From Macrostomum lignano (lineage: Eukaryota): 64,000 bases of DNA. The first letter of the stretch is position 1. Every line of letters starts with the position of its first letter. Made by a program: the position numbers and the translations under genes. Shown one piece after another: positions 3,024 through 62,174 of the stretch. The notes under the pieces are model-generated. The model did no database searches, had not been told where the DNA came from, and saw only the letters and a list, made by a program, of their open reading frames with translations. The stretch is from NCBI GenBank assembly GCA_002269645.1, contig NIVC01001941.1, positions 25,910 to 89,909 of the forward strand, given 5' to 3'.

Positions 3024-4178
3024 ATGAACCATCCCGGTGGCAACAAAATGTCTTCAACAGCAACATTACTGCTGCCTGTGCTGCTCTTGCTTGCGACTGT
3101 TTCAGAGTCAAACTCAGCAGCCAGCACTGATGCGGCCACTGCTGCGTGTCAAGCGCTGTCGGAGTCCATCGGTCCGCAGTCGCTGGCGCAGTGCCACACG
3201 TTGATGTACCCCAGCCAGTTCGGCTACCAAACGAACGTCAGCGTGCACATCTTGCTGAAAACTATCTACGGCCTGGACGAGAAGGAGCTGCTGGAGTTCT
3301 CCGCTTGGTTCCAGATTTCATGGACTGACCCTCGGCTGGCCTGGAATTCTTCAGCACCAGGCAGCCCACAGTACTTGCGAGTCGACCGGGGCAGCGTGTG
3401 GCTACCAGACGTTGGCTTCCTTAATTCGAAGGGCGAGATGTTTGACCTCCGAAACACCAAGTTCACTGACGCAGTAATTTTTCCTACTGGGGAAGTCGGC
3501 ATTTACACATTCGCAGTTGTTCAGTTTGCCTGCGCCATCGATGTGAGATACTTCCCATTCGACACTCAGCTGTGCGCCACCCAACTCGGCACCATATCGT
3601 CAGACACTTCCGGGTTCAAATTGTCGGTGTCTATCAGCTACAACAAATCAGAGAACCTGGGCCTGGATTTGTACCAGGTCGGCGAGTGGGAGCTGATAAG
3701 CGTTACTCATGAGCTTTCCCGATATGTGGCCGCTGGTGACAGCCTTTATGTCGCCAACATCAAGTTCCACCTGAAGCGCAAGTGGATGTACTACGCTGTG
3801 CTGGTGATTGTCCCGTTCGAGCTGCTGTCGCTGCTCGCAAGCATCATGTTCCTGGCTGGTGACAAGAGCGACCCGGTGAACCTGTCCATCGCCATCATCA
3901 TGTCCATGACTCTGTACGTGCTGATCGCGTCCCAGTCGGCTCCGAAGTCCATGAACACGATCCCGCTAGTCGGCCTGTTCCTCATGGCTCAGATGCTCAT
4001 CCTCATCGCGTTCACCTTCATCGCTGCTCTAAAAGTCACTTATTCGTCTGCGACCTCGGAGGCGCCATCTAAACTGAAGAAACTGATTTTGTTTCTGTCA
4101 AAGCACAAAAATGTTGTCTGCTTTATAAGCTACATCAGCCTTACTATCATTAATATTATTGTGTTTGTATACATCTGA
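3024..4178 (+). CDS. Intronless divergent nicotinic acetylcholine receptor-like Cys-loop channel subunit (copy 1, 384 aa)
   Basis: Signal peptide; WTDPRLAW and WLPDV motifs; Cys loop C-x13-C (CAIDVRYFPFDTQLC); four hydrophobic helices M1-M4; no vicinal Cys in loop C. Confidence 0.92.
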   Translation: MNHPGGNKMSSTATLLLPVLLLLATVSESNSAASTDAATAACQALSESIGPQSLAQCHTLMYPSQFGYQTNVSVHILLKTIYGLDEKELLEFSAWFQISWTDPRLAWNSSAPGSPQYLRVDRGSVWLPDVGFLNSKGEMFDLRNTKFTDAVIFPTGEVGIYTFAVVQFACAIDVRYFPFDTQLCATQLGTISSDTSGFKLSVSISYNKSENLGLDLYQVGEWELISVTHELSRYVAAGDSLYVANIKFHLKRKWMYYAVLVIVPFELLSLLASIMFLAGDKSDPVNLSIAIIMSMTLYVLIASQSAPKSMNTIPLVGLFLMAQMLILIAFTFIAALKVTYSSATSEAPSKLKKLILFLSKHKNVVCFISYISLTIINIIVFVYI

Positions 4179-4572
4179 CTTCAATTCATTTCTTTGCGCG
4201 CAAGAACCAACTGGTTTTATTGTTCTATGGTTTGGCTGTGAATCAGACGCTGCAACATCTCTTGACTTTGAAATTAAGAGAAAAACATCTCATCCCTTCA
4301 GCCAAGATTCACTATGCGCTGGATTACTATGCCATGGGTTCTTTTCACAACGCTATTTTCCTCAATGCTTCCTCATTTATTTCGTAGAACGTGATATAAT
4401 TAATTTTTTTTATTTTCATAAAGATTCATCATGTGTACATTTATGTAGAGATTCCACATTACTACGATTGTGCTTCAAGGCAATAGTGCAGCCTCATTAA
4501 AGCAGCTATTATCGCTAATGCGTATGTTGAGAAGATAAGTCAACTGACCCTGGGTCTAAAAGATGTGCCTAA

Positions 4573-5044
4573 GGGAACACGAGAATTTCCCGCCGGAAGT
4601 TTTCCCGCCGAGGCTTGCCCGCCGATATTTCCCCGCTGGAGGTTTCCCCGCTGGAGGTTTTCCCGCTGGAGGTTTCCCCGCTGGAGGTTTCCCCGCTGGA
4701 GGTTTCCCCGCTGGAGGTTTCCCCGCTGGAGGTTTCCGCGCTGAAGGTTTCCCGCTGGAGGTTTCCCCGCTGGAGGTTTCCGCGCTGGAGGTTTCCCGCT
4801 GGAGGTTTCCCCGCTGGAGGTTTCCCCGCTGGAGGTTTCCCCGCTGGAGGTTTCCCCGCTGGAGGTTTCCCCGCCGAGATTTCCCCGCAGGGTTTTTCCT
4901 GTCGGAATCTCAAGTCAAATCCAGTCTATAGACAATGCTGGACTAGATTAGAACTAGCCTAAGACTAGATTTCAAATCCAATTGGAAAAACCCTGCGGGA
5001 AAACCTCCGCGGAAAAACTTCCTGCAGGAAACTCTCATAGACCC
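4573..5044. mobile_element. Non-autonomous DNA transposon (MITE, Merlin-like termini) with internal 15-bp tandem array
   Basis: 8-bp direct repeat GTGCCTAA at 4565-4572 and 5045-5052; termini GGG...CCC; imperfect ~30-bp TIR whose core matches 19/22 (4581-4602 vs 5015-5036); internal gtttccccgctggag array at ~4630-4880. Confidence 0.8.
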
Positions 5045-6128
5045 GTGCCTAATAGCCTTCAAAAAACACAGAAATAGTAGCCAGGAGAGCAAACTGCCTA
5101 TTTTAAGGCTAACCATAGCTAGAAATTGCCCTTCATTCGCAGCCTCATCGTTTTTTGCTTAACTGGGTGTCACAGATGCCGTTCTGGAAAATTCCATCAA
5201 CTAGAACCTCTAGTTTTTGAGGTAATTTGTATTTAAGCATGCACCATCCTAGGTTGGGCGCAGTTTACGTAACAATAGCATCATCATTAACATTCTTATT
5301 ATTAATCTAAATATACTAATATTATTACTATTTCTACGATTATTATTGAAAACACGCTGAGGGTACTGGTATTTAATGATATTACTCGAGGCAAAAATTC
5401 AAAAAGCTAGTGAATAAAAATACTTTTCGACCTAACGGGAGTGAAATCTCGTGTTATTCATGCTTGTTTTCTTCTGTAACAATCTGAAGCCTCATGAAGT
5501 TGCTTTCTAGCTTGTGTCATGTCTTTGATGCAGTTTTCTAGGTAGCATTTCCATCATGTCTTCTTGAGTCATTAGGTAAAATATTTAATCTTCTGCAGTA
5601 AGGTTTTTTTAATTCGGAACTTTATCTGGGATTTCCTGTTCAAGTTTATCACGGAGAAGCACGATACAGTAAAAGTTCCAACTGCACTTAAAAAGTAACT
5701 GAACTTCACTTTCTACTCCCCACATGGCACTTTGAGCAGGTCAGCTGTTCTCCTAAGGGATCTTTGGTCTCGCAGTTCTCATTGTGTCGCAACCCAGTTC
5801 ATGGTTCGAACTCTTCTATCGGTAGAGATGTAGAACGTCCTCAATTTTCGGGACCAGAAAACTCTGCATTTGCTATCCGAGTGTTCAGATAATAAGAAGC
5901 TGTCAATTACATTGCTTAATGACAGGAAAGTGTCATTTATTTTAATGTTGTATGGATGTTGTCTTTAGGCTTACTATGAGTAGTAACTATGAAATAAACT
6001 GCAATTGTACCAAGCAATATTATTATTAATCTGAGTAAGTGTAAAAAACGCTAGTCGAACTCTGTTGGCGGCTGAAGGCCTCAAATTTCTAAATTTTTAT
6101 TGCATACTGCGAGACGAGCGCCAGCAAG

Positions 6129-7268
6129 ATGCGAACCTGTAAATGTATTCTGCCTCTGCTTCTACTAGTTCACAGTATCATGCGCTCAAGCGCCATCGAC
6201 CCGGCAACAAACGCTGACGTGCCTGCGTGCCGCGCACTGGCGGAGTCCATCAGACCGCAGGCGCTGCCGCAGTGCCACGTCTTGCTGTCTCCGAGCTACT
6301 TCGGCTACCAAACAGACGTCAGGGTGTTGATTTATCTGAATACCATCTACGGCCTGGACGAAAAGGAGCTGCTGGAGTTCTCTGGCTGGATTTGGATTTC
6401 CTGGACTGACCCTCGACTCGCCTGGAACTCGTCATCGCCGGGCAGCCCGCACCAGCTGCGTCTCCACAGAAACAGCCTCTGGCTACCGGACGTCGAGTTC
6501 CTCAACTCCAAGGGCGAAATGTTCGCCGATGCTCTATTGTTTCCAACCGGAGAAGCTAGCATTTACACATTCGCAGTGGTGCAGTTCGCATGCGCCATCG
6601 ATGGGAGATACTTCCCCTTCGACAGTCAGCTGTGCGCTATTCAAGTCAGCACAGGAACGTCCGACGTCACGCATTTTAACCTATCGGTGTCTGTTTACTA
6701 CAACAGCTCCACGTACGATGGGCTGGAACTTTCCCTGGTTGGCGAGTGGGATCTGGAGAAAGTGACTGGTGAACAGTCCAGAGAAAAGTCACTTGACTTC
6801 AACTTTTATATGGTGGATTTACAATTCCACCTGAAGCGCAGGTGGATGTACTACGCTGTGCTGGTGATTGTCCCGTTCCAGCTGCTGTCGCTGCTCGCAA
6901 GCATCATGTTCCTGGCTGGTGACAAGAGCGACCCGGTGAACCTGTCCATCGCCATCATCATGTCCATGACTCTGTACGTGCTGATCGCGTCCCAGTCGGC
7001 TCCGAAGTCCATGAACACGATCCTGTTCGGTCTGTTCCTCATGATACAAATGCTCATCCTCATCGCGTTCACCTTCATTTCCGCTCTGAAAGCACACCCC
7101 TCATCTGCGCCCTCGGATGCGCCCTCAACGATCAGAAGACTTGGAAGGTTTTTAGCGAGTCACAAGAATGCAATCTGCTTCATCAGCTACATCCTGCTCA
7201 CGGCTGCAAACATAATCGCGCTTGGTTGGAACGCTGGAGCAGGATTTCCGAGTCAACAGAGGCTTTAA
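6129..7268 (+). CDS. Intronless divergent nicotinic acetylcholine receptor-like Cys-loop channel subunit (copy 2, 379 aa)
   Basis: Paralog of 3024-4178: signal peptide, WTDPRLAW, WLPDV, Cys loop CAIDGRYFPFDSQLC, M1-M4; two small in-frame deletions relative to copy 1. Confidence 0.9.
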   Translation: MRTCKCILPLLLLVHSIMRSSAIDPATNADVPACRALAESIRPQALPQCHVLLSPSYFGYQTDVRVLIYLNTIYGLDEKELLEFSGWIWISWTDPRLAWNSSSPGSPHQLRLHRNSLWLPDVEFLNSKGEMFADALLFPTGEASIYTFAVVQFACAIDGRYFPFDSQLCAIQVSTGTSDVTHFNLSVSVYYNSSTYDGLELSLVGEWDLEKVTGEQSREKSLDFNFYMVDLQFHLKRRWMYYAVLVIVPFQLLSLLASIMFLAGDKSDPVNLSIAIIMSMTLYVLIASQSAPKSMNTILFGLFLMIQMLILIAFTFISALKAHPSSAPSDAPSTIRRLGRFLASHKNAICFISYILLTAANIIALGWNAGAGFPSQQRL

Positions 7269-7804: not shown

Positions 7805-8582
7805 ATGGTCTGTAGATTGTCCATAGTTTTGGAGGCAGACAATGGTAGACTGTGCCTATGGTTTTGGAGGCAGACAATGGTCGATTGTGTCTATGGTTTT
7901 GGAGGCAGACAATGGTCGATTGTGTCTATGGTTTTGGAGGCAGACAATGGTAGATTGTGTCTATGGTTTTGGAGGCAGACAATGGTCGATTGTGTCTATG
8001 GTTTTGGAGCCAGACAATGGTCGATTGTGTCTATGGTTTTGGAGGCAGACAATGGTCGATTGTGTCTATGGTTTTGGAGGCAGACAATGGTAGATTGTGT
8101 CTATGGTTTTGGAGGCAGACAATGGTCGATTGTGTCAATGGTTTTGGAGGCAGACAATGGTAGATTGTGTCTATGGTTTTGGAGGCAGACAATGGTCGAT
8201 TGTGTCTATGGTTTTGGAGGCAGACAATGGTCGATTGTGTCTATGGTTTTGGAGGCAGACAATGGTCGATTGTGTCTATGGTTTTGGAGGCAGACAATGG
8301 TCGATTGTGTCTATGGTTTTGGAGGCAGACAATGGTCGATTGTGTCTATGGTTTTGGAGGCAGACAATGGTAGATTGTGTCTATGGTTTTGGAGGCAGAC
8401 AATGGTAGATTGTGTCTATGGTTTTGGAGGCAGACAATGGTCGATTGTGTCTATGGTTTTGGAGGCAGACAATGGTAGATTGTGTCTATGGTTTTGGAGG
8501 CAGACAATGGTAGATTGTGTCTATGGTTTTGGAGGCAGACAATGGTAGATTGTGTCTATGGTTTTGGAGGCAGACAATGGTA
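7805..8582. repeat. 35-bp minisatellite (gtctatggttttggaggcagacaatggtcgattgt)
   Basis: About 21 near-identical tandem units; all ORFs over it are periodic artefacts. Confidence 0.95.
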
Positions 8583-8761
8583 TTCGCACATAGCATGCTA
8601 TTCGCACATTGACTTTTAATTTAGTAACTCTGAAATCCGCGTGCTCCGCACTTTTAGGATGACACGCTAAGCTAGGAATGTAACCAGTTGTTTTTAATTT
8701 GACTCCATTGGCAATACTTTCCAGCTTTCACGCAGAAGAAAAGCACACGTATCGTTAGCTA

Positions 8762-8925
8762 TTTTTATTAGAGGCAGGGGCTCCGTGTACCTTGGTGCAC
8801 CTTCAGCGACATTGTCAACAACCGGCAAGAGGCATTACTGCCCATTCCGCCGACTCCCCTGAGCAGGCATACAAGCGCGCGGATACGTACGAAGTCATAC
8901 GCACAGGCACACACTCACACGCTGA
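8762..8925 (-). mobile_element. Truncated SINE copy (3' part)
   Basis: Matches 2121-2280 (ttttattagaggcagg...gactcccctgagcaggca...cacacactcacac). Confidence 0.75.
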
Positions 8926-9800: not shown

Positions 9801-12800
9801 CAGCCCTTCATCGTCCCTTCCTCAGCCGCAGCTTTCCTCAGCCGATACCAGCGCGGCTCGCGGGGTCTTGTGCAGTAGAAAATGGCGAATCCCAACGTCA
9901 GCAGGACAATCAGACTGCAAGCTAGGGACACGGCCAGGTTCACGTGATAGTAGGTGACAACTGCGGGCAGGTCAAGAGCGCAAGTTATTACTGCTGCAGA
10001 AATTCCTTCTATGTGTATGTTCTAGATTTTGCGTTGCTGAGCTGCCATGGCTCAATGGGGAGTTGCTGAGATGCCATGGCTCAATGGGGAGTTGCTGAGA
10101 TACCATGGCTCAATGAGGAGTTGCTGAGATACCATGGCTCAATGGTGAGTTGCTGAGATGCCATGGCTCAATGGGGAGTTGCTGAGATACCATGGCTCAA
10201 TGGGGAGTTGCTGAGATACCATGGCTCAATGGGGAGTTGCTGAGATACCATGGCTCAATGGGGAGTTGCTGAGATACCATGGCTCAATGGTGAGTTGCTG
10301 AGATGCCATGGCTCAATGGGGAGTTGCTGAGATACCATGGCTCAATGGTGAGTTGCTGAGATACCATGGCTCAATGGTGAGTTGCTGAGATACCATGGCT
10401 CAATGGGGAGTTGCTGAGATGCCATGGCTCAATGGGGAGTTGCTGAGATACCATGGCTCAATGGTGAGTTGCTGAGATGCCATGGCTCAATGGGGAGTTG
10501 CTGAGATGCTATGGCTCAATGGGGAGTTATCATATTGCCCATATCTTTACAAGACTTCTTAGAATTTCTTACAAAATTTATCAATGACTCACTCTGGCAC
10601 TGTCTCAGCTCGTGATTCTCGTCGCTATAATCTCCGCAGTTGTTGTGCCGATCGCACACCAGGCTCTTGCCTACGCACAGGCGCTTGTTCTTGCATTTGA
10701 ACATGTCCGGCTTGCACTTCGAGGCTGCAGTGGACGGTGGGGGAGCGACTGAATCTATTGAATCTGTCACACTCTCTAACCCTCATTGAATCTGTCACAC
10801 TCTCTAACCCTCATTGAATCTGTCACACTCTCTAACCCTCATTGAATCTGTCACACTCTCTAACCCTCATTGAATCTGTCACACTCTCTGACCCTCATTG
10901 AATCTGTCACACTCTCTGACCCTCATTGAATCTGTCACACTCTCTGACCCTCATTGAATCTGTCACACTCTAACCCTCATTGAATCTGTCACACTCTCTG
11001 ACCCTCATTGAATCTGTCACACTCTCTGACCCTCATTGAATCTGTCACACTCTCTGACCCTCATTGAATCTGTCACACTCTCTGACCCTCATTAAATCTG
11101 TCACACTCTAACCCTCATTAAATCTGTCACACTCTAACCCTCATTAAATCTGTCACACTCTAACCCTCATTAAATCTGTCACACACTCTGACCCTCATTG
11201 AATCTGTCACACTCTCTGACCCTCATTGAATCTGTCACACTCTCTGACCTTCATTAAATCTGTCACACTCTCTAACCCTCATTGAATCTGTCACACTCTC
11301 TGACCCTCATTAAATCTGTCACACTCTCTAACCCTCATTGAATCTGTCACACTCTCTGACCCTCATTGAATCTGTCACACTCTCTGACCCTCATTAAATC
11401 TGTCACACGCTAACCCTCATTAAATCTGTCACACACTCTGACCCTCATTGAATCTGTCACACTCTCTGACCCTCATTGAATCTGTCACACTCTCTGACCT
11501 TCATTAAATCTGTCACACTCTCTAACCCTCATTAAATCTGTCACACACTCTGACCCTCATTAAATCTGTCACACTCTCTGACCCTCATTGAATCTGTCAC
11601 ACTCTCTAACCCTCATTGAATCTGTCACACTCTCTAACCCTCATTGAATCTGTCACACTCTCTGACCCTCATTGAATCTGTCACACTCTCTGACCCTCAT
11701 TGAATCTGTCACACTCTCTGACCCGCTTTGAATCAGCCACTCTAACTCTCCATAAGTCTGTCACTCTAACTCTCCATAAGGTTGTCACTCTAACTCTACA
11801 TAAGTCTGTCACTCTAACTCTCCATAAGTCTCTCTAATGAATCACGGAATTCTGGCACCCACCCGGGAGAGCGTTGGTGTACACCAACCGGAAGTGCACA
11901 TATCGAGGCCCGGTTGTGTGCAGCTGAATCCGGACGAATTTCTCGGACACGATGAACACTTGCTGGTCGCGCACGTGCGAGCAGATCTTGCGGCTCAGGG
12001 CTTTGGTGGTGCTGTTGGACCGCTGGCCTGTCAGTGGCGCCAGTCACTTTAAATAGCTAGGGTGCTGCTTGTACTCATTCTGTTGCAATATCAGATACTT
12101 CTTAGAGGAATAAAAGTTAGTCAAGAACGCGAGAAGAGAGAAAGAAATCGAAAGGAGAGAGAGAAATGAATATTGGAGAAGAATGTGGGAGAGAGGAAAG
12201 AGATAAGAAACAAATTGATTTGGTGTATTAGTGAGCAGAGCATGAAGCAAAGGAAGGAGGGGGGAGGGGAGGAGAGGAAGAGAGAGGGGAGGAAGAGAGA
12301 GGGGAGGAGGAGAGGGGGAGGTGGAGAGAGGGGAGGTGGAGAGAGGGGAGGAGGAGAGAGGGGAGGTGGAGAGAGGGGAGGTGGAGAGAGGGGAGGTGGA
12401 GAGAGGGGAGGTGGAGAGAGGGGAGGAGGAGAGAGGGGAGGTGGAGAGAGGGGGAGGAGGAGAGAGGGAAGGAGGAGAGAGGGAAGGAGGAGAGAGGGAA
12501 GGAGGAGAGAGGGAAGGAGGAGAGAGGGGGAGGAGGAGAGAGGGAAGGAGGAGAGAGGGGGAGGAGGAGAGAGGGAAGGAGGAGAGAGGGGGAGGAGGAG
12601 AGAGGGAAGGAGGAGAGAGGGAAGGAGGAGAGAGGGAAGGAGGAGAGAGGGGGAGGAGGAGAGAGGGAAGGAGGAGAGAGGGGGAGGAGGAGAGAGGGAA
12701 GGAGGAGAGAGGGAAGGAGGAGAGAGGGGGAGGAGGAGAGAGGGGGAGGAGGAGAGAGGGAAGGAGGAGAGAGGGAAGGAGGAGAGAGGGAAGGAGGAGA

Positions 12801-15800
12801 GAGGGAAGGAGGAGAGAGGGAAGGAGAGAGGAAAGGAGAGAAGGGAGGGAGGAGAGAGGGAAGGAGGAGAGAGGGAAGGAGGAGAGAGGGGAGGAGGAGA
12901 GAGGGAAGGAGGAGAGAGGGAAGGAGAGAGGTAAGGAGAGAAGGGAGGGTGGAGAGAGGGGAGGAGGAGAGGGGGGAGAGAGGTCTATGAGAATCAGCAG
13001 ACAGGATTTGAGGCAATAGGAAAAGAATAAGGGAAAGATAGCAAGGATAAAATTAACAAGAGAGAGGAACAAGTGAACAGTGATACACAGGTCCGTGTGA
13101 ACTAACCTGCCAGAATCTGTATGTAGTTGTCGCAGCGCCTGTGGAACAGGTGCACATTTCGCACCTGCAGATTCTCTATGGAGAGCACCAGCTGCCTGCC
13201 AGGCATGGACTCTAACAGCAGGTGGCAATCCGCCAGGTGGCCCTCCGTGTATCCCTGCGCGCTGACGATTCCCGTCTCCGTGGGCGCCGGTACGCCGCTG
13301 CACGAGTTGAGAAGATCGGCTTCAAGGAACAACGAAAGAAAAATCAGTTAAGGGCTCAGCTGAACGATTTTATGTTATTAGAGGCAGCACGACTTTGTCA
13401 CACAACCGGCGAGAGGCATTACTGCCCTGAGCAGGCACACAAGCGCGCGGATACGTACGCAGTCATACGCACAGGCACGCACTCACACAGGAGTGTACTA
13501 TCTAACTGACTATCTAACCATGTTAAGCATGCACACTCTCTGCGCCTTGGCGGTTGGTTCTCATGGCTGTGAATTGCCCCGAATTGATGAAGCTGCGCAC
13601 AGATTCGAACCAGGGGTCGCGGCGCGAGAGTCGGACGCGTTCACCGCTGAGCTGCCCTGCCCCATTATGTTTCTAGAGTTTACGTTTTAGAAATATTTGA
13701 TTCATGCACCATTGCAAAGATAGCATGCACAGTGTTTCATCTCTCGAAAAACTTATAATTTCAACAAACAGCTGGTAGCTTGTGTTTTTGTAACCCCCCC
13801 CCCAAACGGCTCTTTGGGTGCTGAATTTGACCTCGATTACGTAATCTCAACTGTGTAGCGATGTGACCTCGCTACTTTAGCATTGCTCTCGGCTAAAAAA
13901 TTCGAATAATATAAACGCTTGTAGAGGCGCAACCTCTCCCGCGGTGCATCAAGTGCAGCTGGGACAGCTCAAGCTCCTCCGCTGCCAAAATCTAGTATTT
14001 ATCAGTAGTGCGACTGTTTCCCGTCTCTCAGCATCTTCAGCTTCATCCTGGCCAGCTCAGCCGGAGCCAACAGGCAGGACGGGGCGATGCAGCGTCAGCT
14101 GGAAGAATTGCAGCTGATTGACACTTTCGGTGAGCGCCGCTTGGAGTCTTTGTTTCAGTCCGATCGAGTCCTGAGACATCGTGTGACATGGATTGGTTAT
14201 ACTCTAATGCTTTTATTAAGATTTGAGTCTTTGTTTCAGTCCGATCGAGTCCTGAGACATCGTGTGACATGGATTGGTTATACTCTAATGCTTTTATTAA
14301 GATTTGAGTCTTTGTTTCAGTCCGATCGAGTCCTGAGACATCGTGTGACATGGATTGGTTATACTCTAATGCTTTTGTTAACATTTGAGTCTTTGTTTCA
14401 GTCCGATCGAGTCCTGAGACATCGTGTGACATGGATTGGTTATACTCTAATGCTTTTGTGAAGATTTGAGTCTTTGTGCGGTAAAAATTACAATCTTTTC
14501 TGTCGCTGACTCCTGAGCACATGGAATCGCGCCAATGCTGTACGCAGGCACGCACTCGTGCACACGCTAACATAGGGTGTACAGCGGCCCTGACTTTCTA
14601 ATCGTCTGGCATGTACACTCTCTGAACACTGATATCAAAATTCAATGAAGTTTTGCTAACTGCATGAGCAGAGCCAGAGAATGACAACCGCAACAGATTC
14701 TCAAGCTTTGCCGCTCCGTACAGGCGAGGACGCGGGGCTCGGCAAGCTGCTGCTCAGCTTTCACTACTCAAAGCCGCAGCGGAAGCTCACGGTGAAGCTG
14801 CTCAGGGCAGTCGGACTGCAGCCAAACGACGGCCAGCTCTGCCCCTACGTGACTCTCCGGTTCCTGCCGGTCCAGGCCGAGACCAACCAGCTGCGTACCC
14901 GGGCTCGAATCCTCACCAACCGGCCGGTCTGGCTGGAGGCCTTCGAGTTCAACAAATTCGACGAGTCGCTGCTCACTGCTGATCAGCGGCATCTGGCACT
15001 GCTGCTGGAGGTGCGCGACGAATGCAACAGCGCTGGCGCCGAGCCTCGGCGCCGCCTACTCGGCCGGATTGTCGTGCCGCTGCGCCGCCTGCCGCCCGGC
15101 AGCCTCCGCGGCGACGGCGTCATGTTCTGGCGCCACTTGGAGGCGCCGGCGGAGGCGGACAGCGAGGCCGACGAAGCAGCCGGCCTGGACCTCCTGCGCC
15201 TGGCGCTGCGCATCGGGCGTCGGTCTGGCCGGCTGTCGGTCGGGCAGCTGCGCTTCTGGCGCCGAAACGGCGGCGAAGCCGCGCAGCGAGTGCAGCTCCG
15301 CCTGCAGCTGGTGCTGCGCGCCACTGGCGAGCTGCTGGCGGACTGGTGGAGCCGGCCGGCGCTTCTGCGGCAGCGGCGCCAACAGCGCCTGCGTTGGAAA
15401 CCGGCGCCAGCCTCCAGTCTGCCGACGCCAGTGGCTTCGTGGCGCGACATCGCCCGGCTGGCCATGCCGCATGGCGCGGCGCACACTTGCGCGCTCAAAC
15501 TGCGCGCCTACCGGCTGACCGGCACCGCCGGCGACGACGCCAGCGCTGAAGAAGGAAAATCGACGGCCTCAGAGCTGGAGCTGGGCTGGGCGGAGCTCAG
15601 CTGCTCGGCCGGCCGATTGGAATCCTGGCGGTGCGTCTGGAGTCGCCTGGTGGACGGCGGCGACGGCGGCGGCTGGCTGGTGGCTTCTCTGCCGCTGCTG
15701 ACCGCCGAGTATCCAAGAGCTTCGTCTTCCTTGAAGTCGTCAATTTAACGTTTAAATGCCCCACTGATTGAGTCGCTCACTGATTGAGTCGCTCACTGAT

Positions 15801-16826
15801 TGAGTCGCTCACTAATTGAGTCGCTCACTAATTGAGTCGCTCACTAATTGAGTCGCTCACTGATTGAGTCGCTCATTGATTGAGTCGCTCACTGATTGAG
15901 TCGCTCACTGATTGAGTCGCTCACTGATTGAGTCGCTCACTGATTGAGTCGCTCACTGATTGAGTCGCTCACTGATTGAGTCGCTCACTGATTGAGTCGC
16001 TCACTGATTGAGTCGCTCACTGATTGAGTCGCTCACTGATTGAGTCGCTCACTGATTGAGTCGCTCACTGATTGAGTCGCTCACTGATTGAGTCGCTCAC
16101 TGATTGAGTCGCTCACTGATTGAGTCGCTCACTGATTGAGTCGCTCACCGATTGAGTCGCTCACTGATTGAGTCGCTCACTGATTGAGTCGCTCACTGAT
16201 TGAGTCGCTCACTGATTGAGTCGCTCACTGATTGAGTCGCTCACTGATTGAGTCGCTCACTGATTGAGTCGCTCACTGATTGAGTCGCTCACTGATTGAG
16301 TCGCTCACTGATTGAGTCGCTCACTGATTGAGTCGCTCACTGATTGAGTCGCTCACTGATTGAGTCGCTCACTGATTGAGTCGCTCACTGATTGAGTCGC
16401 TCACTGATTGAGTCGCTCACTGATTGAGTCGCTCACTGATTGAGTCGCTCACTGATTGAGTCGCTCACTGATTGAGTCGCTCACTGATTGAGTCGCTCAC
16501 TGATTGAGTCGCTCACTGATTGAGTCGCTCACTGATTGAGTCGCTCACTAATTGAGTCGCTCACTGATTGAGTCGCTCACTGATTGAGTCGCTCCCTAAT
16601 CTTAATGACAGTTAAAATTTTTCCTTTAGAATTATGATTAATTAAACTAGCGAAATTTTATTTTGAAGCATAAAAATATAATTCAAATTCATAATTAATC
16701 AATAATGACAGCAGCACAAAGATACTCACTTAGCTGATACCAGCCTTGAACTCCATCAGTACAGAGTAGCAAAGTCAGAGCAATGAGGATCGCTGCAGCT
16801 CGCAGTGGATCTCCCCTGCCAGGCAT
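9800..16826 (-). CDS. Type I membrane protein: signal peptide-CUB-LDLa-TM-short tail (~263 aa; MIG-13/LDLRAD2/NETO/LEV-10-type architecture)
   Basis: Five exons, all introns phase 1 with GT/AG: 16826-16730 (MPGRGDPLRAAAILIALTLLLCTDGVQGWYQL), 13319-13107 (CUB N-half, C...GIVSAQGY...DCHLLLES...CDNYIQI), 12027-11863 (CUB C-half, KICS...FVRIQLHT...FRLVYT), 10748-10593 (LDLa, CKPDMFKCKNKRLCVGKSLVCDRHNNCGDYSDE), 9960-9800 (TM VNLAVSLACSLIVLLTLGFAIFYC then RPREPRWYRLRK, TGA). Total 792 nt, in frame. Confidence 0.85.
10030..10530. repeat. 29-bp intronic minisatellite (gttgctgagataccatggctcaatgggga)
   Basis: About 17 tandem units. Confidence 0.95.
10752..11830. repeat. 28-bp intronic minisatellite (attgaatctgtcacactctctaaccctc)
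   Basis: About 35 units, starting immediately at the LDLa-exon acceptor and degenerating at the far end. Confidence 0.95.
12240..12985. repeat. GA-rich low-complexity array (gaggagagagggaag-like)
   Basis: Purine-only short-period repeat inside an intron. Confidence 0.95.
13375..13663 (-). mobile_element. tRNA-derived SINE, head type II
   Basis: Minus-strand head GGGGCAGGGCAGCTCAGCGGTGAACGCGTCCGACTCTCGCGCCGCGACCCCTGGTTCGAATC; body and 3' end shared with 2121-2466. Confidence 0.8.
14087..15748 (+). CDS. Synaptotagmin-like tandem C2-domain protein (probably Ca2+-independent), nested in the CUB-LDLa gene intron
   Basis: Exon 14087-14129 (donor GTGAGC, phase 1) joins exon 14724-15748. C2A motifs GKLLLSFHYSKPQRKLTVKLLRAVGL, CPYVTLRFLP, TRARILTNRPVWLEAFEF, LLGRIVVPL; a degenerate second C2 follows (LRLALRIGRRSGRLSV). 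The true start may be further upstream (frame open back to 14009). Confidence 0.75.
14145..14475. repeat. 69-bp tandem repeat (~4.7 copies)
   Basis: gagtctttgtttcagtccgatcgagtcctgagacatcgtgtgacatgg... repeated, inside the intron of the C2 gene. Confidence 0.95.
14503..14625 (-). mobile_element. SINE internal fragment
   Basis: Contains the shared core gtgtacagcggccctgactttctaatcgtc..gcatgtacactctctg. Confidence 0.7.
15762..16595. repeat. 16-bp minisatellite (ctcactgattgagtcg)
   Basis: About 52 nearly perfect units directly after the C2 gene stop codon. Confidence 0.97.
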
Positions 16827-29150: not shown

Positions 29151-29714
29151 CGCATAATTTCTTCATAGTTTCAGACAACTCACAAACAAAAGTTTTTGAA
29201 TTTTAAATTTTGGAAGTGAAAATGATTTTTGAAGTTGCAAATATTCAGTTTGTCTACTTCAAGTAGCAATACGCAGGTAATCAGGCAGTGACAAGAACTG
29301 TGTTTTTGTCAAAATAGGCAGAATCGGCCGCTTCAATCAACCAGCGATTTTATTTATAAAGCTTGATTGAACGGAAACAAAAGCTAGGATTAACACCAGC
29401 AGCCCGATTCAAATATAGCTGGCATATTTGGGAACCAGTCAATCAATTAAAGTCAGTACAATAGGAGTGTACAAAGATATCAAGATATGTTCATAGGCAA
29501 TAAATGCAATTTTGCTGTCAAACACAGAAAGAAGAAGCGATTGTGTGCCAGAAGAACAGGTGCCAGACAGTTCAGCATTGAAGCTTATCAACGAGAGCAA
29601 GCACTATTGTGAAATAGGTGTTTGAATCTAAAACTGACTTGACAAGAAATTTAGTAATATTTTCTGCGGAGCATCAATTGGATTTGGGAAAGCGTTTCCT
29701 TAGAATAGGGCCAC

Positions 29715-31568
29715 TAACAGTGTCACAAACAGTGTCACAAACAGTGCCACAAATAGTGCCACAAACAGCGCCACAAACAGTGTCACAAACAGTGCCACAA
29801 ATAGTGCCACAAACAGTTCCTCAAACAGTGCCTCAAACAGTGCCACGAACAGTGTCACAAACAGTGCCACAAACAGTGCCACGAACAGTGCCACAAACAG
29901 TGCCACAAACAGTGCCACAAACAGTTCCTCAAACAGTGCCACAAACAGTGCCTCAAACAGTGTCACAAACAGTGCCACAAACAGTTCCTCAAACAGTGCC
30001 ACAAACAGTGCCTCAAACAGTGCCACAAACAGTGCCACAAACAGTGCCTCAAACAGTGCCACGAACAGTGTCACAAACAGTGCCACAAACAGTTCCTCAA
30101 ACAGTGCCACGAACAGTGTCACAAACAGTGCCTCAAACAGTGCCTCAAACAGTGTCACAAACAGTGCCACAAACAGTTCCTCAAACAGTGCCACAAACAG
30201 TGCCTCAAACAGTGCCACGAACAGTGTCACAAACAGTGTCACAAACAGTGCCACAAACAGTGCCACGAACAGTGTCACAAACAGTGTCACAAACAGTGCC
30301 ACAAACAGTGCCACAAACAGTGCCACAAACAGTGCCACAAACAGCGCCACAAACAGTGTCACAAACAGTGCCACAAACAGTACCACAAACAGTTCCTCAA
30401 ACAGTGCCACAAACAGTGCCTCAAACAGTGCCACGAACAGTGTCACAAACAGTGCCACAAACAGTTCCTCAAACAGTGCCACAAACAGTGCCACGAACAG
30501 TGTCACAAACAGTGCCACAAACAGTGCCACAAACAGTGCCACGAACAGTGTCACAAACAGTGTCACAAACAGTGCCACAAACAGTGCCACAAACAGTGCC
30601 ACAAACAGCGCCACAAACAGTGTCACAAACAGTGCCACAAACAGTACCACAAACAGTTCCTCAAACAGTGCCACAAACAGTGCCTCAAACAGTGTCACAA
30701 ACAGTGCCACAAACAGTTCCTCAAACAGTGCCACAAACAGTGCCTCAAACAGTGCCACGAACAGTGTCACAAACAGTGCCACAAACAGTGCCACAAACAG
30801 TGCCACGAACAGTGTCACAAACAGTGTCACAAACAGTGCCACAAACAGTGCCACAAACAGTGCCACAAACAGCGCCACAAACAGTGTCACAAACAGTGCC
30901 ACAAACAGTGCCACAAACAGTGCCACAAACAGTGCCACAAACAGCGCCACAAACAGTGTCACAAACAGTGCCACAAACAGTACCACAAACAGTTCCTCAA
31001 ACAGTGCCACAAACAGTGCCTCAAACAGTGCCACGAACAGTGTCACAAACAGTGCCACAAACAGTTCCTCAAACAGTGCCACAAACAGTGCCACGAACAG
31101 TGTCACAAACAGTGCCACAAACAGTGCCACAAACAGTGCCACGAACAGTGTCACAAACAGTGTCACAAACAGTGCCACAAACAGTGCCACAAACAGTGCC
31201 ACAAACAGCGCCACAAACAGTGTCACAAACAGTGCCACAAACAGTACCACAAACAGTTCCTCAAACAGTGCCACAAACAGTGCCTCAAACAGTGTCACAA
31301 ACAGTGCCACAAACAGTTCCTCAAACAGTGCCACAAACAGTGCCTCAAACAGTGCCACGAACAGTGTCACAAACAGTGCCACAAACAGTGCCACAAACAG
31401 TGCCACGAACAGTGTCACAAACAGTGTCACAAACAGTGCCACAAACAGTGCCACAAACAGTGCCACAAACAGCGCCACAAACAGTGTCACAAACAGTGCC
31501 ACAAACAGTGCCACAAACAGTGCCACAAACAGTGCCACAAACAGCGCCACAAACAGTGTCACAAACAG
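29715..31568. repeat. 12-bp minisatellite (acaaacagtgcc) with 600-bp higher-order duplication
   Basis: About 155 units; 30301-30960 is repeated at 30901-31560. Confidence 0.97.
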
Positions 31569-31733
31569 CATTCTGTCGGTTTACTTCCCAAATCTCACAG
31601 CACCTTTAACTGCCATCAGAATCCTCACTCGAGTCCTTTCATCTTCATCTCCCCCTCCGAACAGGAAACACCGCACGTATGAACTGGAGCTCTAACTGGC
31701 TGCTGAGCTCATGCTTAGCCAGACAGGATATCC

Positions 31734-34700
31734 TCAGCCGGCGGAGTACCGACCAGAATTGGGCGTCTTCGGCGCGCTCATGTTGGCGTACAGGCTGATG
31801 TCCGGCAGCACCAGCCTCTCGCCTCCGTCCTCATCGTCGCAGGCCTCATCGTCGCTGCTTGAGTCGAGACCGACGCCGTTTCTCAAACTACTGGAGCCTC
31901 TGACTGTCTGCGCGTCCGCCTCGCCTTCCTCCTCCTCCTCTTCTGTGATTGGCTCCGGCCTGGCCCAGTTCTGGCCAATCCCGGCAGCCCTGGCGTCGGC
32001 TAACAAGCGGTCGAGAACTGCGCGATCCAGGGGCGGAACCTGGAATGCAATATGTTGCGGTTTATACTACTAATGTTGACAGTAGACAGAATGCGCATCC
32101 TAGCACGGATAATTAAAATGCAGGAGTAGAACGGATTGCTAATCTAGCCAATAGCAGAAAACTATTGATACTAATAGAGTAAACAGACTCTGATAATAAT
32201 TATTAGATAGTTACTCCCGCTGTTTATTAAAAACAATTGCCAACAGGAAGATCACGGGCGCACCTGAATAGCCAGTTCTCGGCTCGCCTCATCGTCTGGC
32301 AGCCTGGCGGAGGACAGCGAATCGACGTCACCGCCGGTCTCGCTGGCGGCGCTCGTCGGCCCAGCGGCAGATGCCGTCGACTGCAGGCTGCGGTGGCTGC
32401 CCAGCTGGGAATTCGCGTCCCGGACACTGTGGCTGGCAGCGATAGAGCGGGAGCAGTCGGACAGCAGGGCGGACATGGCCTCGGCCGAGAGTGGACCCTG
32501 GGACGACTGCCGGTGTGAGGGGATGGGGTGTTAATTAAAGTTCATACAGTCCTTAGAGTGTGTTCAACTTGCAGCTACAGTCTGAGATCGAAGTCCATAT
32601 GCTAAAACTTTATTTAAATTCTCAAATCCAACATATCAAATCCAACATATCAAATCCAACATATCAAATCCAACATATCAAATCCAGCATATCAAATCTA
32701 ACATATCAAAGCTAACATATCAAATCCAAAATCTCAAATTCGACGTCTCAAATCCAACATCTCAAATCCAACATCTCAAATCCGACATCTCAAATCCAGC
32801 ATCTCAAATCCGACATCTCAAATCCAACGTCTCAAATCCAACATCTCAAATCCAACAGCTTAAATCCAACATCTCAAATCCAACATCTCAAATCCAACAT
32901 CTCAAATCCAACATCTCAAATCCGACATCTCAAATCCAACATCTCAAATCCAACATCTCAAATCCAACAGCTCAAATCCAACATCTCAAATCCGACATCT
33001 CAAATCCAACATCTCAAATCCAACATCTCAAATCCGACATCTCAAATCCAACAAATCCACAAAGCCAGAAATCACCTCATTGCTAATCAAAGAAAGCCGG
33101 CTGTTCAGCTCCTCCAGCCGGTGACTCATCAGTCGCTCCTCTTTGACTTCGGCGAGCGCCTTCTCGCCGAGCCTGTCCAGATCCCAGTCCTGGCCGGCCG
33201 TAGCCCGCTGCAGCGCGGTGGCTCTGTACGCGTCGCTCAGCTCCGACTGTCGCCTTGCCGACGACGGCGACTCCTCCGACCAGGCGGTCAGCGCCGGCGG
33301 CGGCACGGAGCCGAGGCGGGCCAGGCCAGCTTCGATTTCGCGTAGTCGACGCGAATCGGCGTCGGAGACTCGGTAGCCCTCGCCCGGGCTGAGCTCGGCC
33401 AGCTGGTAGCCCGAGCTCGAATCCTGCCGTAGTAGCGGCGGTGGGAGGCGCGAGTGAAATTTTCCGGTGTTGTTTAGTTTTTTACGATGAAAACACGCCA
33501 CAGGCGGTGTGCACAGCCAACGAAACCCATGGCAAGTTGATTCAATTCATATAAAGCATAAAGCATGATAAACATGAAATGCAACTTGATAGACACGCTG
33601 ATTTAACTCAATAAGCACAATGGCTCGACTCGATAAACACATGATTCGATTTGATAAACAGACGAATCCAATTTATTAACTAACAAATCAAATCCATAAA
33701 CTTACAAGCCAAATCGATAAACACACGAATTAAACCGATAAACAGACGAGCCAAATCGATAAACACACAAATCAATTGATAAACACACACGCCAAATCGA
33801 TAAACACACGAATAAAATTCATAAACACACAAGCCAAATCGATAAACACACGAATCAAATCGATAAAAACAAGACTCAAATCGATCAACAAACATCAAAT
33901 TGATAAACACATGAAACAAATCGATAAACACACGAATAAAATCGATAAACATGACATCAAATTCAATAAAGACGCGCAGCATTCTGACACATTTGCTTTT
34001 CAAACACCAAAAATGAATGAGAAGCACAGCCAATATAAAAAAATGAACAATGGAACTGTCTTACATGGCTTCTGTTGGACTTAATTAAATAATTATTTTG
34101 TTAAAATGATATTCAACCGTATTTTTGTGCTCCATAGCAATGTTTAAATTAACAGTGTGAACTATTTTTTATTAGAAATTTGTGCCAATTAAATCTTTAC
34201 ATAATTGCAAACAGCTGTGAAACAATTTTCAGTGACAGCCACTTGTCGGCCTTCATAACTCATGTTAGCAATATGAATGTGTTTCATCTGTGTAAAATGC
34301 GAGAGAGCGCTGTGACAAGCCAAGACCGCTCTCAGCTCCCCAGACACCAAACCAAACAATAAAGAATAAAAAGCCATCAAACTAAATGAAAAAATACAAA
34401 GCAAAATTGGCAACAAACTATTCCAATGCTGAGAACAGTCGATGGTGTTGGTGGTAAGCTGAGCATCTCAGGGTCCAGCTGAAAGCAACAACAGGTGAGC
34501 GAGTCTGTGTGTCCTCGACGCCCAATATTAGATAGGGGCCTAATTCGAGTTCTAGAAACTAATTCTAGCTACTAATTAGTAGTATTATCACTAAATCATT
34601 AATTTTTCCTTCATATTCAATACTTGCTATTTTTAAGTAGGCGCAAGACACATGTGTCAATATTTTATCCACTAACTGGTGTTGCTTGGAAGCATTGAGC

Positions 34701-62105: not shown

Positions 62106-62174
62106 GTAAAAGTGCGAATTTTAAAGGAGCCACTATATGCTAAGGAAATTGTCGCACTAGCTACTTATTGTCTG

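Follow-up and report, generated by a model that had tools for sequence, protein, structure and literature searches.

Two intron-free Cys-loop receptor genes in tandem in Macrostomum lignano: candidate non-alpha partner subunits of cation channels

Results

Two intact genes lie in tandem

The window, by which we mean the whole 64,000-nucleotide stretch of Macrostomum lignano DNA that was analysed, contains two genes whose products, p1 and p2, are 67% identical in protein sequence (Table 1). Each open reading frame (ORF) runs from an ATG and a hydrophobic signal peptide through a ligand-binding domain (LBD), the Cys-loop, M1 to M3 and a C-terminal M4 to a stop codon. Since the full architecture is contained in one ORF, the coding sequence of p1 and p2 requires no intron. 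A sequence-only reading had described a tandem pair of single-exon Cys-loop receptor genes at exactly these positions, and this was borne out. So was its remark that other genes here have introns, which holds for three of them: the P450 gene has an intron of about 98 nt (GTGAGA...AATCAG) with its exons in different frames, the FSIP1 gene is divided between 35284-36555 and 33028-33501, and a vitellogenin-like gene is divided between 49046-53629 and 54559-54924.

Table 1. Features of the two receptor genes and of the DNA between them
Feature	Position in window	Strand	Remarks
Gene 1 (p1), complete single-ORF pLGIC subunit	3024..4178	+	384 aa; stop codon within span
p1 signal peptide region	3024..3119	+	residues about 1-32; hydrophobic stretch TATLLLPVLLLLATV in translation
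p1 N-terminal helix with Cys pair C42, C57	3141..3197	+	model helix 36-54
p1 ligand-binding domain	3207..3782	+	residues 62-253; Pfam envelope
p1 Cys-loop CAIDVRYFPFDTQLC	3531..3575	+	columns invariant across family
Gene-conversion tract, p1 side	3740..4035	+	partner 6800-7092
p1 M1-M2-M3	3783..4037	+	model helices 254-281, 284-305, 315-342
p1 M3-M4 linker	4038..4112	+	about 25-26 residues
p1 M4 helix	4113..4175	+	model helix 362-383; stop codon directly after; aligns with family M4
Intergenic spacer	4179..6128	.	15-bp minisatellite at 4589-4888, about 20 copies
Gene 2 (p2), complete single-ORF pLGIC subunit	6129..7268	+	379 aa; stop codon within span
p2 ligand-binding domain	6306..6842	+	residues 60-238
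p2 M1-M3	6843..7094	+	M2 identical to p1
p2 M4 helix	7170..7229	+	then 12-residue C-terminal tail; based on alignment

The identity of both proteins as Cys-loop receptors is far above chance level, with Pfam Neur_chan_LBD matches at E=3.4e-32 (p1) and 2.5e-26 (p2). All 60 of the PDB sequence matches listed are acetylcholine-receptor subunits (E=7e-34 to 9e-25), and p1 aligns with alpha7 and beta4 at about E-33 in an alignment reaching through M3. An AlphaFold2 model of p1 (pLDDT 78.5) consists of a beta-sandwich and four helices. The predicted fold is nAChR-like and the subunit architecture of p1 and p2 is complete; the pair derives from the nAChR branch. The p1 Cys-loop is C170-x13-C184, with FPFD. 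The p1 signal-peptide cleavage site was placed by reading the translation, not by a prediction tool, and translation might instead begin at a second Met, residue 9. Alignment also found the N-terminal Cys pair in p2 and in P0066, a further M. lignano protein described below. Compared with p1 and P0066, the LBD of p2 is missing 7 residues after loop A. The spacer showed no similarity to the DNA upstream of p1.

Both copies are constrained, and gene conversion has homogenised M1-M2

With a dS of about 0.7-0.9, the two genes have a dN/dS of 0.33 across the whole sequence and of 0.27 for the LBD, which shows long-term purifying selection on both. Relative to P0066, p2 has 22 unique changes and p1 has 21, giving equal rates. 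We therefore regard it as very improbable that p1 and p2 are functionless retrocopies or duplicates in decay. Such an origin would suit their intronless state, the two in-frame deletions in p2 and the lack of both proteins from the public protein collection, but both ORFs are intact across about 380 codons with every structural motif in place, and selection and equal rates of change likewise argue against decay.

Divergence is not uniform along the pair. In a tract also seen as direct repeats D4 (94%) and D6 (86%), dS falls to 0.11, versus 0.89 in the LBD, and third-position identity is 1.00 (Fisher p=1.9e-8). Its core, codons about 257-301, spans M1-M2 and is 99-100% identical in DNA. Recent gene conversion thus homogenises M1-M2 of the two genes. 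The relatives P0075, P0089 and P0236 are uninterrupted ORFs too, and P0075 is genomic because its contig is long-read metagenomic. The intron-free state therefore seems older than the duplication of p1 and p2, and the tandem pair would have arisen by DNA-level duplication of an already intronless gene.

The pore is unusual and the intracellular domain is nearly absent

In an ungapped alignment to alpha7 M2, p1 has Asp at −4′, Asp at −1′, Pro at 0′, Met at 9′ and Gln at 20′. This is an unusual pore, with Pro where Lys or Arg is expected at 0′ and Met where Leu is expected at 9′, in addition to the 20′ Gln. Given the acidic −1′ residue and the lack of a Pro-Ala-Arg anion motif, the pore is predicted to be cation selective. 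The M2-M3 loop of p1 is SAPKSMNTIP; in p2, one residue is deleted (NTI-LFG) and the conserved Pro is gone. Beyond M3, p1 continues for 47 aa, whereas across 182 nAChR-like proteins the median is 185 aa, and with an M3-M4 linker of about 26 residues p1 and p2 are essentially without an intracellular domain. The short linker, the gene-conversion tract and the 0′ Pro and 9′ Met of the pore were all absent from the sequence-only reading.

We think it rather unlikely that no ligand gates p1 and p2 at the orthosteric site and that they serve instead as modulatory, dominant-negative or leak-type subunits, or as sensors of protons, ions or lipids like the zinc-activated channel and some orphan pLGICs. 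The 0′, 9′ and 20′ substitutions would agree with such a role, as would the missing gating Pro of p2 and the loss of key (+) face aromatics; nevertheless, the elements of signal transduction (Cys-loop FPFD, pre-M1 Arg, WxPD motif, loop D Trp) are conserved and constrained, and nothing points to any particular alternative stimulus.

The binding-site residues match those of non-alpha subunits

The loop A and loop B motifs quoted in the sequence-only reading, and its statement that the loop D Trp is retained, were confirmed by alignment. Loop A is WLPDVGFLN in p1 and WLPDVEFLN in p2, with Leu replacing Tyr (L132 in p1). In loop B (LGTISS in p1 and VSTGTS in p2), the Trp has become Ile (I191 of p1) or Gly (p2), while the loop D Trp (W94 in p1) is kept in both copies. 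The loop C motif YxCC..Y had been called absent, which is correct for the Cys-Cys but not for the tyrosines: p1 loop C, Y234-V-A-A-G-D-S-L-Y242, has Ala-Ala at the Cys-Cys position and keeps both, and p2 keeps the second alone. With these residues, p1 and p2 cannot build a canonical principal (alpha-type) acetylcholine (ACh) face.

It does not follow that the acetylcholine site has been lost, as had been claimed. In the same alignment, the gamma, delta, epsilon and beta1 subunits of vertebrates likewise have other residues at the positions of the loop A Tyr and loop B Trp and lack the Cys-Cys; gamma, delta and epsilon retain the loop D Trp, which is Phe in beta1. A profile alignment places frog gamma PDVGL[E]N and FQS[Q]TYS opposite PDVGF[L]N and LGT[I]SSD of the window. 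These vertebrate subunits are components of ACh-gated receptors, so the pattern that they have in common with p1 and p2 does not imply loss of the site, and the step to a chemoreceptor is weak.

Identity between p1 and p2 reaches 78-79% in loops D and E of the (−) face, versus 47% in loop B and 39% in loop C of the (+) face, although a comparison of two sequences has little power. The p1 loop C (Y-x-A-A-G...Y) is also conserved with P0066 despite an overall identity of 47%, which hints that loop C of the (+) face is still in use.

The nearest relatives are flatworm proteins

Among 1.84 billion representatives, the best match of p1 and p2 was M. lignano A0A1I8I4U5 (E=8e-66), which is 48% identical to p1 and 44% identical to p2. 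It belongs to cluster P0066 (A0A1I8I4U5, A0A1I8HUS3 and A0A1I8HYE3, annotated "Neur_chan_LBD domain-containing protein"), which forms a clade with p1 and p2 in an LBD tree (82% bootstrap). P0066 shares with the pair loop A PDVGF-x-N, a loop B without Trp (G-G-I-S-S-D), loop C K-Y-N-A-A-G...Y and the N-terminal Cys pair, and a 15-residue block, DPATNADVPACRALA, is identical to p2. Its gene model is truncated at 273 aa and ends in M1, so the comparison excludes the pore, linker and M4. Being identical to neither p1 nor p2, P0066 is either another paralogue or the orthologue of a sister species.

The nearest named relatives outside Macrostomum are neodermatan "AChR-related" subunits of the Smp_012000 (GDR) and SDR types (31-37% identity). 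We compared members from Fasciola (THD26242), Paragonimus (KAA3676803), Clonorchis/Opisthorchis, Dicrocoelium, Heterobilharzia, S. turkestanicum (CAH8572864) and the monogenean Cichlidogyrus. They group with p1 and p2 with moderate support (52-65% bootstrap), and this clade was not recovered from the LBD alone. Like the pair, they lack the loop A Tyr (PDVG[LV]MN) and the Cys-Cys and have −1′ Asp and an AP(K/R)SM M2-M3 loop in place of the canonical xPxTS. Their Cys-loop, CPLDVSFFPFDYQTC, agrees with the published Smp_012000 sequence (PMC6151654). Unlike p1 and p2, they carry intracellular domains hundreds of residues long, the Fasciola gene is interrupted by introns and covers 13.3 kb, and the GDR type retains the loop B Trp. 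These subunits are functionally uncharacterised.

A lineage-specific expansion had also been proposed, but none is visible. No third copy was found by tblastn in the 64-kb window, P0066 was the sole 50%-identity cluster to exceed 40% identity in an exhaustive protein search, and a further search starting from the P0066 protein recovered only its own three members. The loop A Tyr is missing from the neodermatan relatives as well, so this loss, at least, is probably ancient rather than a recent event within the lineage.

Discussion

Vertebrate muscle non-alpha subunits offer a proposed working mode for p1 and p2, as complementary-face or structural partners of alpha. The replacements themselves differ (loop A Tyr to Glu/Asp there and Leu here; loop B Trp to Gln/Leu/Gly there and Ile/Gly here). 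The two groups are not orthologous, being about 24-28% identical and separate in trees, and the vertebrate subunits differ from p1 and p2 in their long intracellular domains and in having canonical sequences for M2 and the M2-M3 loop. The vertebrate genes are multi-exon.

The cephalopod chemotactile receptors (CRT1, PDB 8EIS; CRB1) are nAChR derived, intronless, duplicated and without ACh-binding residues (PMC11526382, PMC10338036). Their gene structure and the type of loss recall p1 and p2, but they form a separate lineage. None was found among the 60 PDB sequence matches or the 50 fold matches listed, and with flatworm proteins as the nearest relatives of the pair, the independence from cephalopods that had been suggested stands. 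Of the two, it is the chemotactile receptors for which 6-26 copies, diversifying pocket selection, ligands and sensory expression are documented. In molluscs, intron-free tandem nAChR arrays are likewise lophotrochozoan, and some members are short too (Mytilus coruscus CHRNN, 359 aa, short linker), but the families run to tens to hundreds of copies versus two here (Jiao et al. 2019, PMC6896357; flatworms lay outside its scope). Our trees revealed no phylogenetic link to them. The molluscan background given in the sequence-only reading agrees with the literature. Up to 26 chemotactile receptors occur in Octopus, and the nAChR genes of bivalves total 99-217, with 11-120 intronless genes per mollusc genome (PMC11526382, PMC6896357). 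Alpo4 of Alvinella pompejana (PDB 8BX5), which the PDB search matched at E=1e-26, is another lophotrochozoan nAChR-like subunit without a loop C Cys-Cys and has no known agonist; unlike p1 and p2, it keeps the aromatic box (F103, W159, Y199, Y205, W65), and its intracellular domain comprises about 105 residues (PMC10338036).

The pair may represent a new family of chemoreceptors. In that case, p1 and p2 would form homomers or heteromers that are unresponsive to ACh and gated by another, possibly environmental ligand, as an independent flatworm analogue of the chemotactile receptors. We hold this to be a lesser but serious possibility, with evidence on both sides. The pair has lost the cation-pi Trp of loop B and the Tyr of loop A; the genes are intron free and in tandem, like those of the chemotactile receptors and of numerous other chemoreceptor families (PMC11526382, PMC6896357); divergence is greatest in binding loops B, C and F, loops D and E being conserved in this two-sequence comparison, and the pore is held identical by gene conversion; p1 shares its loop C with P0066; the near lack of an intracellular domain leaves no obvious synaptic scaffold-binding region; and other invertebrate nAChR-like orphans such as Alpo4 do not respond to ACh (PMC10338036). 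Set against this, the residue pattern does not discriminate, since ordinary subunits (gamma, delta, epsilon and beta1) have it too; the window contains two copies and M. lignano one related cluster; diversifying selection is not detected at the resolution of an overall dN/dS; and parasite orthologues without the loop A Tyr occur in one or two copies per genome.

Our preferred reading, held tentatively, is that p1 and p2 are functional tandem intron-free genes for divergent non-alpha partner subunits of cation channels. They would enter the pentamer without a classical agonist (+) face, providing a (−) face or a structural position beside alpha-type subunits, like vertebrate gamma, delta, epsilon and beta1, and ACh or a related quaternary amine, bound where alpha and non-alpha subunits meet, would still open the channel. 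As p1 and p2 lack an intracellular domain, any scaffold or cytoplasmic regulation would presumably be supplied by the partner subunits, although the near absence of this domain is unusual among synaptic nAChR subunits. Other observations also speak against partner subunits: the APKSM M2-M3 loop, 0′ Pro, 9′ Met and 20′ Gln might hinder co-assembly with an ordinary alpha, the shared loop C may mean that the (+) face is used, and cephalopod nAChR derivatives without ACh residues can be ACh-insensitive receptors themselves (PMC11526382). On the side of the partner-subunit reading are the receptor architecture, the purifying selection and equal rates of the two copies, the residue pattern shared with gamma, delta, epsilon and beta1, the stronger conservation of (−) face loops D and E than of (+) face loops B and C, the ungapped M2 alignment with its −1′ and −4′ Asp, the older intron-free state and, finally, family size. 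With one M. lignano cluster and two paralog types in schistosomes, Smp_012000 (GDR) and SDR (PMC9874803), a neuronal housekeeping subunit would fit better than a fast-turnover chemoreceptor family.

Two intact nicotinic-type subunit genes in tandem

Both Cys-loop receptor ORFs lie exactly where a sequence-only reading of this DNA had placed them, and their proteins are 67% identical to each other. A tblastn search of the 64-kb window found no third copy or fragment. Each protein opens with a methionine and a hydrophobic signal sequence; M4 closes it, and the stop codon comes right after. Since each ORF spans the whole distance from signal sequence to M4, the coding sequence needs no intron; introns limited to the untranslated regions may still exist in either gene. 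The contrast that had been drawn between an intronless pair and intron-bearing neighbors was borne out, the three other genes for a cytochrome P450, an FSIP1-family protein, and a vitellogenin-like protein being split. An exact look-up in a public protein collection returned no record for gene 1, gene 2, or two other ORFs of the window.

Both genes exceeded the gathering score of the Pfam ligand-binding domain (LBD) model, the beta-sandwich PF02931 (E = 3.4e-32 and 2.5e-26), and both fell below the 28.1-bit threshold of PF02932 (21.1 and 12.8 bits). The Cys-x13-Cys loop with its F/YPxD motif is present in each (CAIDVRYFPFDTQLC in gene 1 and CAIDGRYFPFDSQLC in gene 2), its columns being invariant. 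All of M1 to M4 are present: PDB alignments extend from the first beta strands to M3, and the AlphaFold2 model of gene 1 (mean pLDDT, 78.5; pTM, 0.68), which consists of an N-terminal helix, a beta-sandwich, and four long helices, supplies the four (residues 254-281, 284-305, 315-342, and 362-383). The N-terminal helix bears a pair of cysteines that the sequence-only reading had not mentioned and that is kept in the M. lignano protein cluster P0066.

All 60 PDB sequence matches listed were acetylcholine receptor subunits (E = 7e-34 to 9e-25), in the order alpha7, alpha3, beta4, and beta2, followed by muscle beta, delta, alpha, gamma, and epsilon, Alpo4, and DES-2. Likewise, 49 of the 50 fold matches listed for the gene 1 model were nicotinic acetylcholine receptors (nAChRs), headed by alpha7 and muscle nAChR chains (E about 1e-23; TM about 0.7). 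The pair thus belongs to the nicotinic branch of the Cys-loop superfamily rather than to the 5-HT3, GABA, Gly, or GluCl receptors.

Coordinates of genes and repeats in the window
Feature	Position	Strand	Details
Gene 1	3024-4178	+	complete ORF, 384 aa
Gene 2	6129-7268	+	complete ORF, 379 aa
C2-domain ORF	14681-15748	+	355 aa
Cytochrome P450 gene	23907-25916	-	Pfam E = 4.5e-72 (3' exon)
FSIP1-family (fibrous sheath interacting protein) gene	33028-33501 + 35284-36555	-	family matches in two ORFs
Vitellogenin-like large lipid-transfer protein gene	49046-53629 + 54559-54924	-	Vitellogenin_N, open beta-sheet, and VWD matches
Dispersed repeat	2120-2436, 8761-8920, 13390-13577, 36907-37140, 42491-42594, 55802-56105		about 150-300 bp, 73-86% identity between copies
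Minisatellite	4589-4888		15 bp x 20
Minisatellite	7818-8581		35 bp x 22
Minisatellite	10757-11734		28 bp x 35
Minisatellite	15762-16594		16 bp x 52
Minisatellite	29710-31568		12 bp x 155
Minisatellite	58474-62112		23 bp x 158

The binding-site pattern is that of non-alpha subunits

We read the binding-site columns from the alignment to alpha7 and from a profile alignment of 244 nAChR-like domains, and both confirmed the motifs quoted in the sequence-only reading for loops A, B, and D. The loop D tryptophan is present in both genes. Leucine replaces the loop A tyrosine in both (PDVGF[L]N and PDVEF[L]N), and the loop B tryptophan is replaced by isoleucine in gene 1 and by glycine in gene 2. The YxCC..Y motif of loop C had been called absent, which holds for the vicinal cysteines at the loop tip, missing from both genes, and goes too far for the tyrosines. 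Loop C of gene 1, Y234-V-A-A-G-D-S-L-Y242, is alpha-like, with both tyrosines in place and Ala-Ala where Cys-Cys would be; that of gene 2 has no cysteine and keeps the second tyrosine only.

Neither gene therefore has the alpha-type features (Cys-Cys, and a loop A tyrosine with a loop B tryptophan), and both have the non-alpha pattern (no Cys-Cys, loop D tryptophan kept), non-alpha being a functional class and not a clade. On sequence grounds, these residues show that the window proteins cannot serve as alpha-type, principal-face subunits.

To conclude from the same residues that the acetylcholine site has been lost, as had been done, is an over-reading. The pattern recurs in the vertebrate gamma, delta, epsilon, and beta1 subunits: in the same profile alignment, gamma (Xenopus and Discoglossus) has PDVGL[E]N and FQS[Q]TYS, epsilon has PDIVL[E]N and FRS[Q]TYS, a delta-like subunit has PEIVL[E]N and FSS[L]TYN, and a beta1-like subunit has PDVGL[D]N and FRS[G]SYG. 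Cys-Cys is found in none of the vertebrate non-alpha subunits aligned, and the loop D tryptophan is found in gamma, delta, and epsilon. In the muscle nAChR, gamma, delta, and epsilon give the complementary face and beta1 holds a structural position, and all are integral parts of receptors gated by acetylcholine. Because these subunits share it, the residue pattern of the window proteins is no proof that their receptors ignore acetylcholine.

It is quite conceivable, if a little short of an even prospect, that the window genes encode non-alpha partner subunits of cation-selective pentamers whose channel is still opened by acetylcholine or a similar amine. Such subunits would adjoin alpha-type subunits in the pentamer and contribute a complementary or structural face, and the amine would bind at the alpha interface to open the channel. 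Identity between the two genes is 78 to 79% in loops D and E, 47% in loop B, and 39% in loop C. Stronger conservation of D and E than of B and C would be expected of a partner subunit; with two sequences compared, it would also be compatible with binding loops that diversify. The main rival is the idea of the sequence-only reading, that these are acetylcholine-insensitive receptors for another ligand. We consider it doubtful, and it draws on the loss of the cation-pi tryptophan and on the conservation of loop C between gene 1 and the related M. lignano protein.

A near-absent intracellular domain and an atypical pore

The M3-M4 linker, overlooked in the sequence-only reading, is only about 26 residues long. 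The tail after M3 measures 47 amino acids in gene 1 and 58 in gene 2, compared with a median of 185 among 182 nAChR-like proteins; both rank within the four shortest of the 182, and the two that fall between them are truncated models. The subunits are practically without an intracellular domain. We rejected the short linker as a unique trait, since a few mollusc and unnamed proteins have one as well, though several short models are merely truncated; a near-absent intracellular domain is rare but not unique.

M2 reads G-D-K-S-D(-1')-P(0')-V and aligns to the alpha7 M2 without gaps. Because aspartate stands at both -4' and -1' and the Pro-Ala-Arg anion motif is lacking, the pore is predicted to be cation selective. 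Three of its positions are atypical, with proline at 0', methionine at 9', and glutamine at 20' in place of the usual Lys/Arg, leucine, and glutamate. The missing intracellular domain speaks for an acetylcholine-insensitive receptor, as do the atypical pore and gating loop, which would perhaps mix poorly with canonical alpha subunits. For subunits built in this way, a modulatory role or some other mode of gating would be a further reading, though a distinctly improbable one.

The closest relatives come from flatworms

Among 1.84 billion representatives searched exhaustively with HMMER, a single close relative emerged, P0066 (A0A1I8I4U5 and two near-identical entries), a truncated 273-residue model with E = 8e-66 and identities of 48% and 44% to genes 1 and 2. 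Its loops A, B, and C have the same pattern as those of the window pair. Word-indexed searches with gene 1, the family alignment, and P0066 mainly retrieved subunits of vertebrate muscle; the true nearest relatives came up in the exhaustive search alone.

A block of 15 residues, DPATNADVPACRALA, just past the signal peptide of gene 2 (residues 24-38, about 6198-6242), is identical in P0066. It sits in a poorly conserved region of an otherwise 44%-identical pair, and its identity suggests exchange between paralogues within one genome, the same as or very close to that of M. lignano.

Many database models of 800 to 1,200 amino acids, among them P0067 to P0074, P0076, P0078, and P0080, join two to eight tandem nAChR-like genes into one protein. 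Fused models came from Mactra, Mesorhabditis, Owenia, Trichinella, and others, and fusion inflates whole-protein search scores. The high-scoring, multi-stretch matches from the four named genera were therefore rejected as closer relatives.

The next relatives, at 31 to 38% identity, fall into two sets. One comprises three single-ORF genes from read assemblies: P0075, from a Logan contig of ERR14224704 (gene at 210-1373), is a genomic, uninterrupted ORF of 387 amino acids with 38% identity, and two more came from other read sets. ERR14224704 is a Tara Pacific coral-holobiont long-read metagenome (PMC13083261). We dropped the claim that the short-linker subgroup is confined to flatworms, given this source of P0075 and the origin of the other two in read sets; its range may be wider. 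The second set is neodermatan, with members from Fasciola, Paragonimus, Clonorchis/Opisthorchis, Dicrocoelium, Heterobilharzia, Schistosoma, and the monogenean Cichlidogyrus. In the schistosome-type matches, both the Cys-loop, CPLDVSFFPFDYQTC, and the pre-M2 motif, GDR, agree with those published for Smp_012000, a gene whose annotation goes no further than "AChR-related" (PMC6151654, PMC9874803). The description of Smp_337330 is in keeping with another schistosome type, which has SDR instead.

The window pair and these two sets have in common a loop A without tyrosine (PD[VIL]G-x-x-N), the -1' aspartate, and the M2-M3 loop AP(K/R)SM. They differ in that the GDR type keeps the loop B tryptophan, whereas it is gone from the Macrostomum and short-linker sequences. 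Trematode members also have a long intracellular domain and an intron-containing gene (that of Fasciola covers 13.3 kb in three coding blocks), in contrast to the reduced linker and uninterrupted coding sequences of the window genes. The intron-free state is a trait of the short-linker relatives and probably older than the tandem duplication.

Neighbor joining on the profile alignment grouped the window pair with these relatives at 65% bootstrap, and on a MAFFT alignment it did so at 52%, with an intruding anion-channel long branch. An LBD-only tree supported just the window pair with the M. lignano protein (82%) and did not recover the wider clade. The link to the Smp_012000 group thus has moderate support and appears to come mainly from the transmembrane part. 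The pair is best classed with the divergent or orphan nAChR-like subunits already known from lophotrochozoans, as new, unannotated members whose intracellular loop is unusually reduced.

Both copies are constrained, and gene conversion has homogenized the pore

By the Nei-Gojobori method, dS between the genes is 0.71 and dN is 0.23, giving dN/dS of 0.33 overall and 0.27 in the LBD. Relative to P0066 as the outgroup, 22 changes are unique to one copy and 21 to the other. Because dN/dS is low and the unique changes are nearly equal, both copies are under similar purifying selection. On these grounds we rejected decay of one copy, and the selection data contradict a dead duplicate, which we regard as highly improbable. 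Two in-frame deletions are derived in gene 2: seven residues are gone after loop A, and a single residue in the M2-M3 loop, with which the conserved proline is lost.

Within a tract at 3740-4035 in gene 1 and 6800-7092 in gene 2, the DNA of M1-M2 (codons about 257-301) is 99 to 100% identical, third positions included. Elsewhere, third-position identity is 0.47 to 0.70 in the LBD and 0.33 in the linker and M4, and dS outside the tract is about 0.9. For synonymous differences, the contrast is 6 of 60 sites versus 66 of 128 (Fisher P = 1.9e-8). The M1-M2 identity is the result of recent gene conversion that homogenized the pore.

Two marks of a retrogene origin, shared flanks and a poly-A remnant after either stop codon, were looked for and not seen, which at a dS of about 0.9 is uninformative. 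Direct repeats at 2167-2267 and 8818-8920 were rejected as boundaries of a duplication or transposon, as the element occurs in at least six places in the window; its presence on both sides of the gene pair is chance. The element is possibly of the SINE or MITE kind. A stretch of it at about 2415-2430 resembles a tRNA T-arm in reverse, and neither ARAGORN, for tRNAs, nor Rfam gave a match in the window.

The surrounding sequence

In the P450 gene, the reading frame changes across an intron of about 98 nt (GTGAGA...AATCAG), and the upstream exon carries the WKxxRRF motif of helix C. The two FSIP1 ORFs are about 1.8 kb apart, the upstream one overlapping a 32-bp minisatellite (35784-36497). The vitellogenin-like gene includes an uninterrupted exon of about 1,527 codons.

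The density of minisatellites is extraordinary, with more than 25 arrays of unrelated units in 64 kb. They yield long spurious ORFs on both strands, for example, 29618-31609 (+) and 29700-31571 (-). The Macrostomum genome is repeat rich, and the minisatellite load of the window agrees with this.

Comparison with cephalopod chemotactile receptors

The sequence-only reading had proposed a lineage-specific expansion, of which the window and the library show no sign: the 64 kb hold two copies, and the one related cluster of M. lignano is also the only 50%-identity cluster in the whole library above 40% identity to the window genes in the exhaustive search. A search seeded with P0066, made on an insensitive index, returned only its own three-member cluster. 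In schistosomes, the members number one or two. Chemotactile receptors (CRs) number as many as 26 in octopus (PMC11526382), and bivalves have 99 to 217 nAChR genes in total, with 11 to 120 intronless copies per mollusc genome (PMC6896357).

The window pair resembles the CRs in being intronless, duplicated, and without acetylcholine-binding residues, a likeness that is resemblance only. The CRs number 6 to 26 copies with diversifying selection in the pocket; the 64 kb of the window hold two copies, with dN/dS of 0.27 in the LBD. The CRs are known as acetylcholine-insensitive receptors of hydrophobic contact cues expressed in sensory epithelium. No CR structure appears among the 60 PDB sequence matches and 50 fold matches listed. 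Because of this and because their nearest relatives are flatworm proteins, the window genes are placed, provisionally and from search results rather than from trees, outside the cephalopod CR clade.

A broader version of the non-cholinergic reading is that free-living flatworms have a small nAChR-derived lineage, without introns or an intracellular domain, that has abandoned acetylcholine and forms homo- or heteropentamers for a non-cholinergic, possibly environmental ligand. We think this rather unlikely. Gene conversion would then hold the pore constant as the binding loops diverge, and the lineage would be a second independent transition from neurotransmitter to sensory receptor, after the cephalopod CRs.

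If the genes encode ordinary partner subunits, the value of the finding is modest: two unannotated flatworm channel genes would gain an annotation, together with a moderately supported tie to the uncharacterized Smp_012000-type subunits of schistosomes, whose possible use as anthelmintic targets has been discussed. Structural work, and the question of what the intracellular domain is for, would profit from a natural eukaryotic Cys-loop subunit that has hardly any of it. If the receptors are instead insensitive to acetylcholine, the cephalopod CR case would have an independent parallel, and one directly testable, since Macrostomum is a laboratory model.
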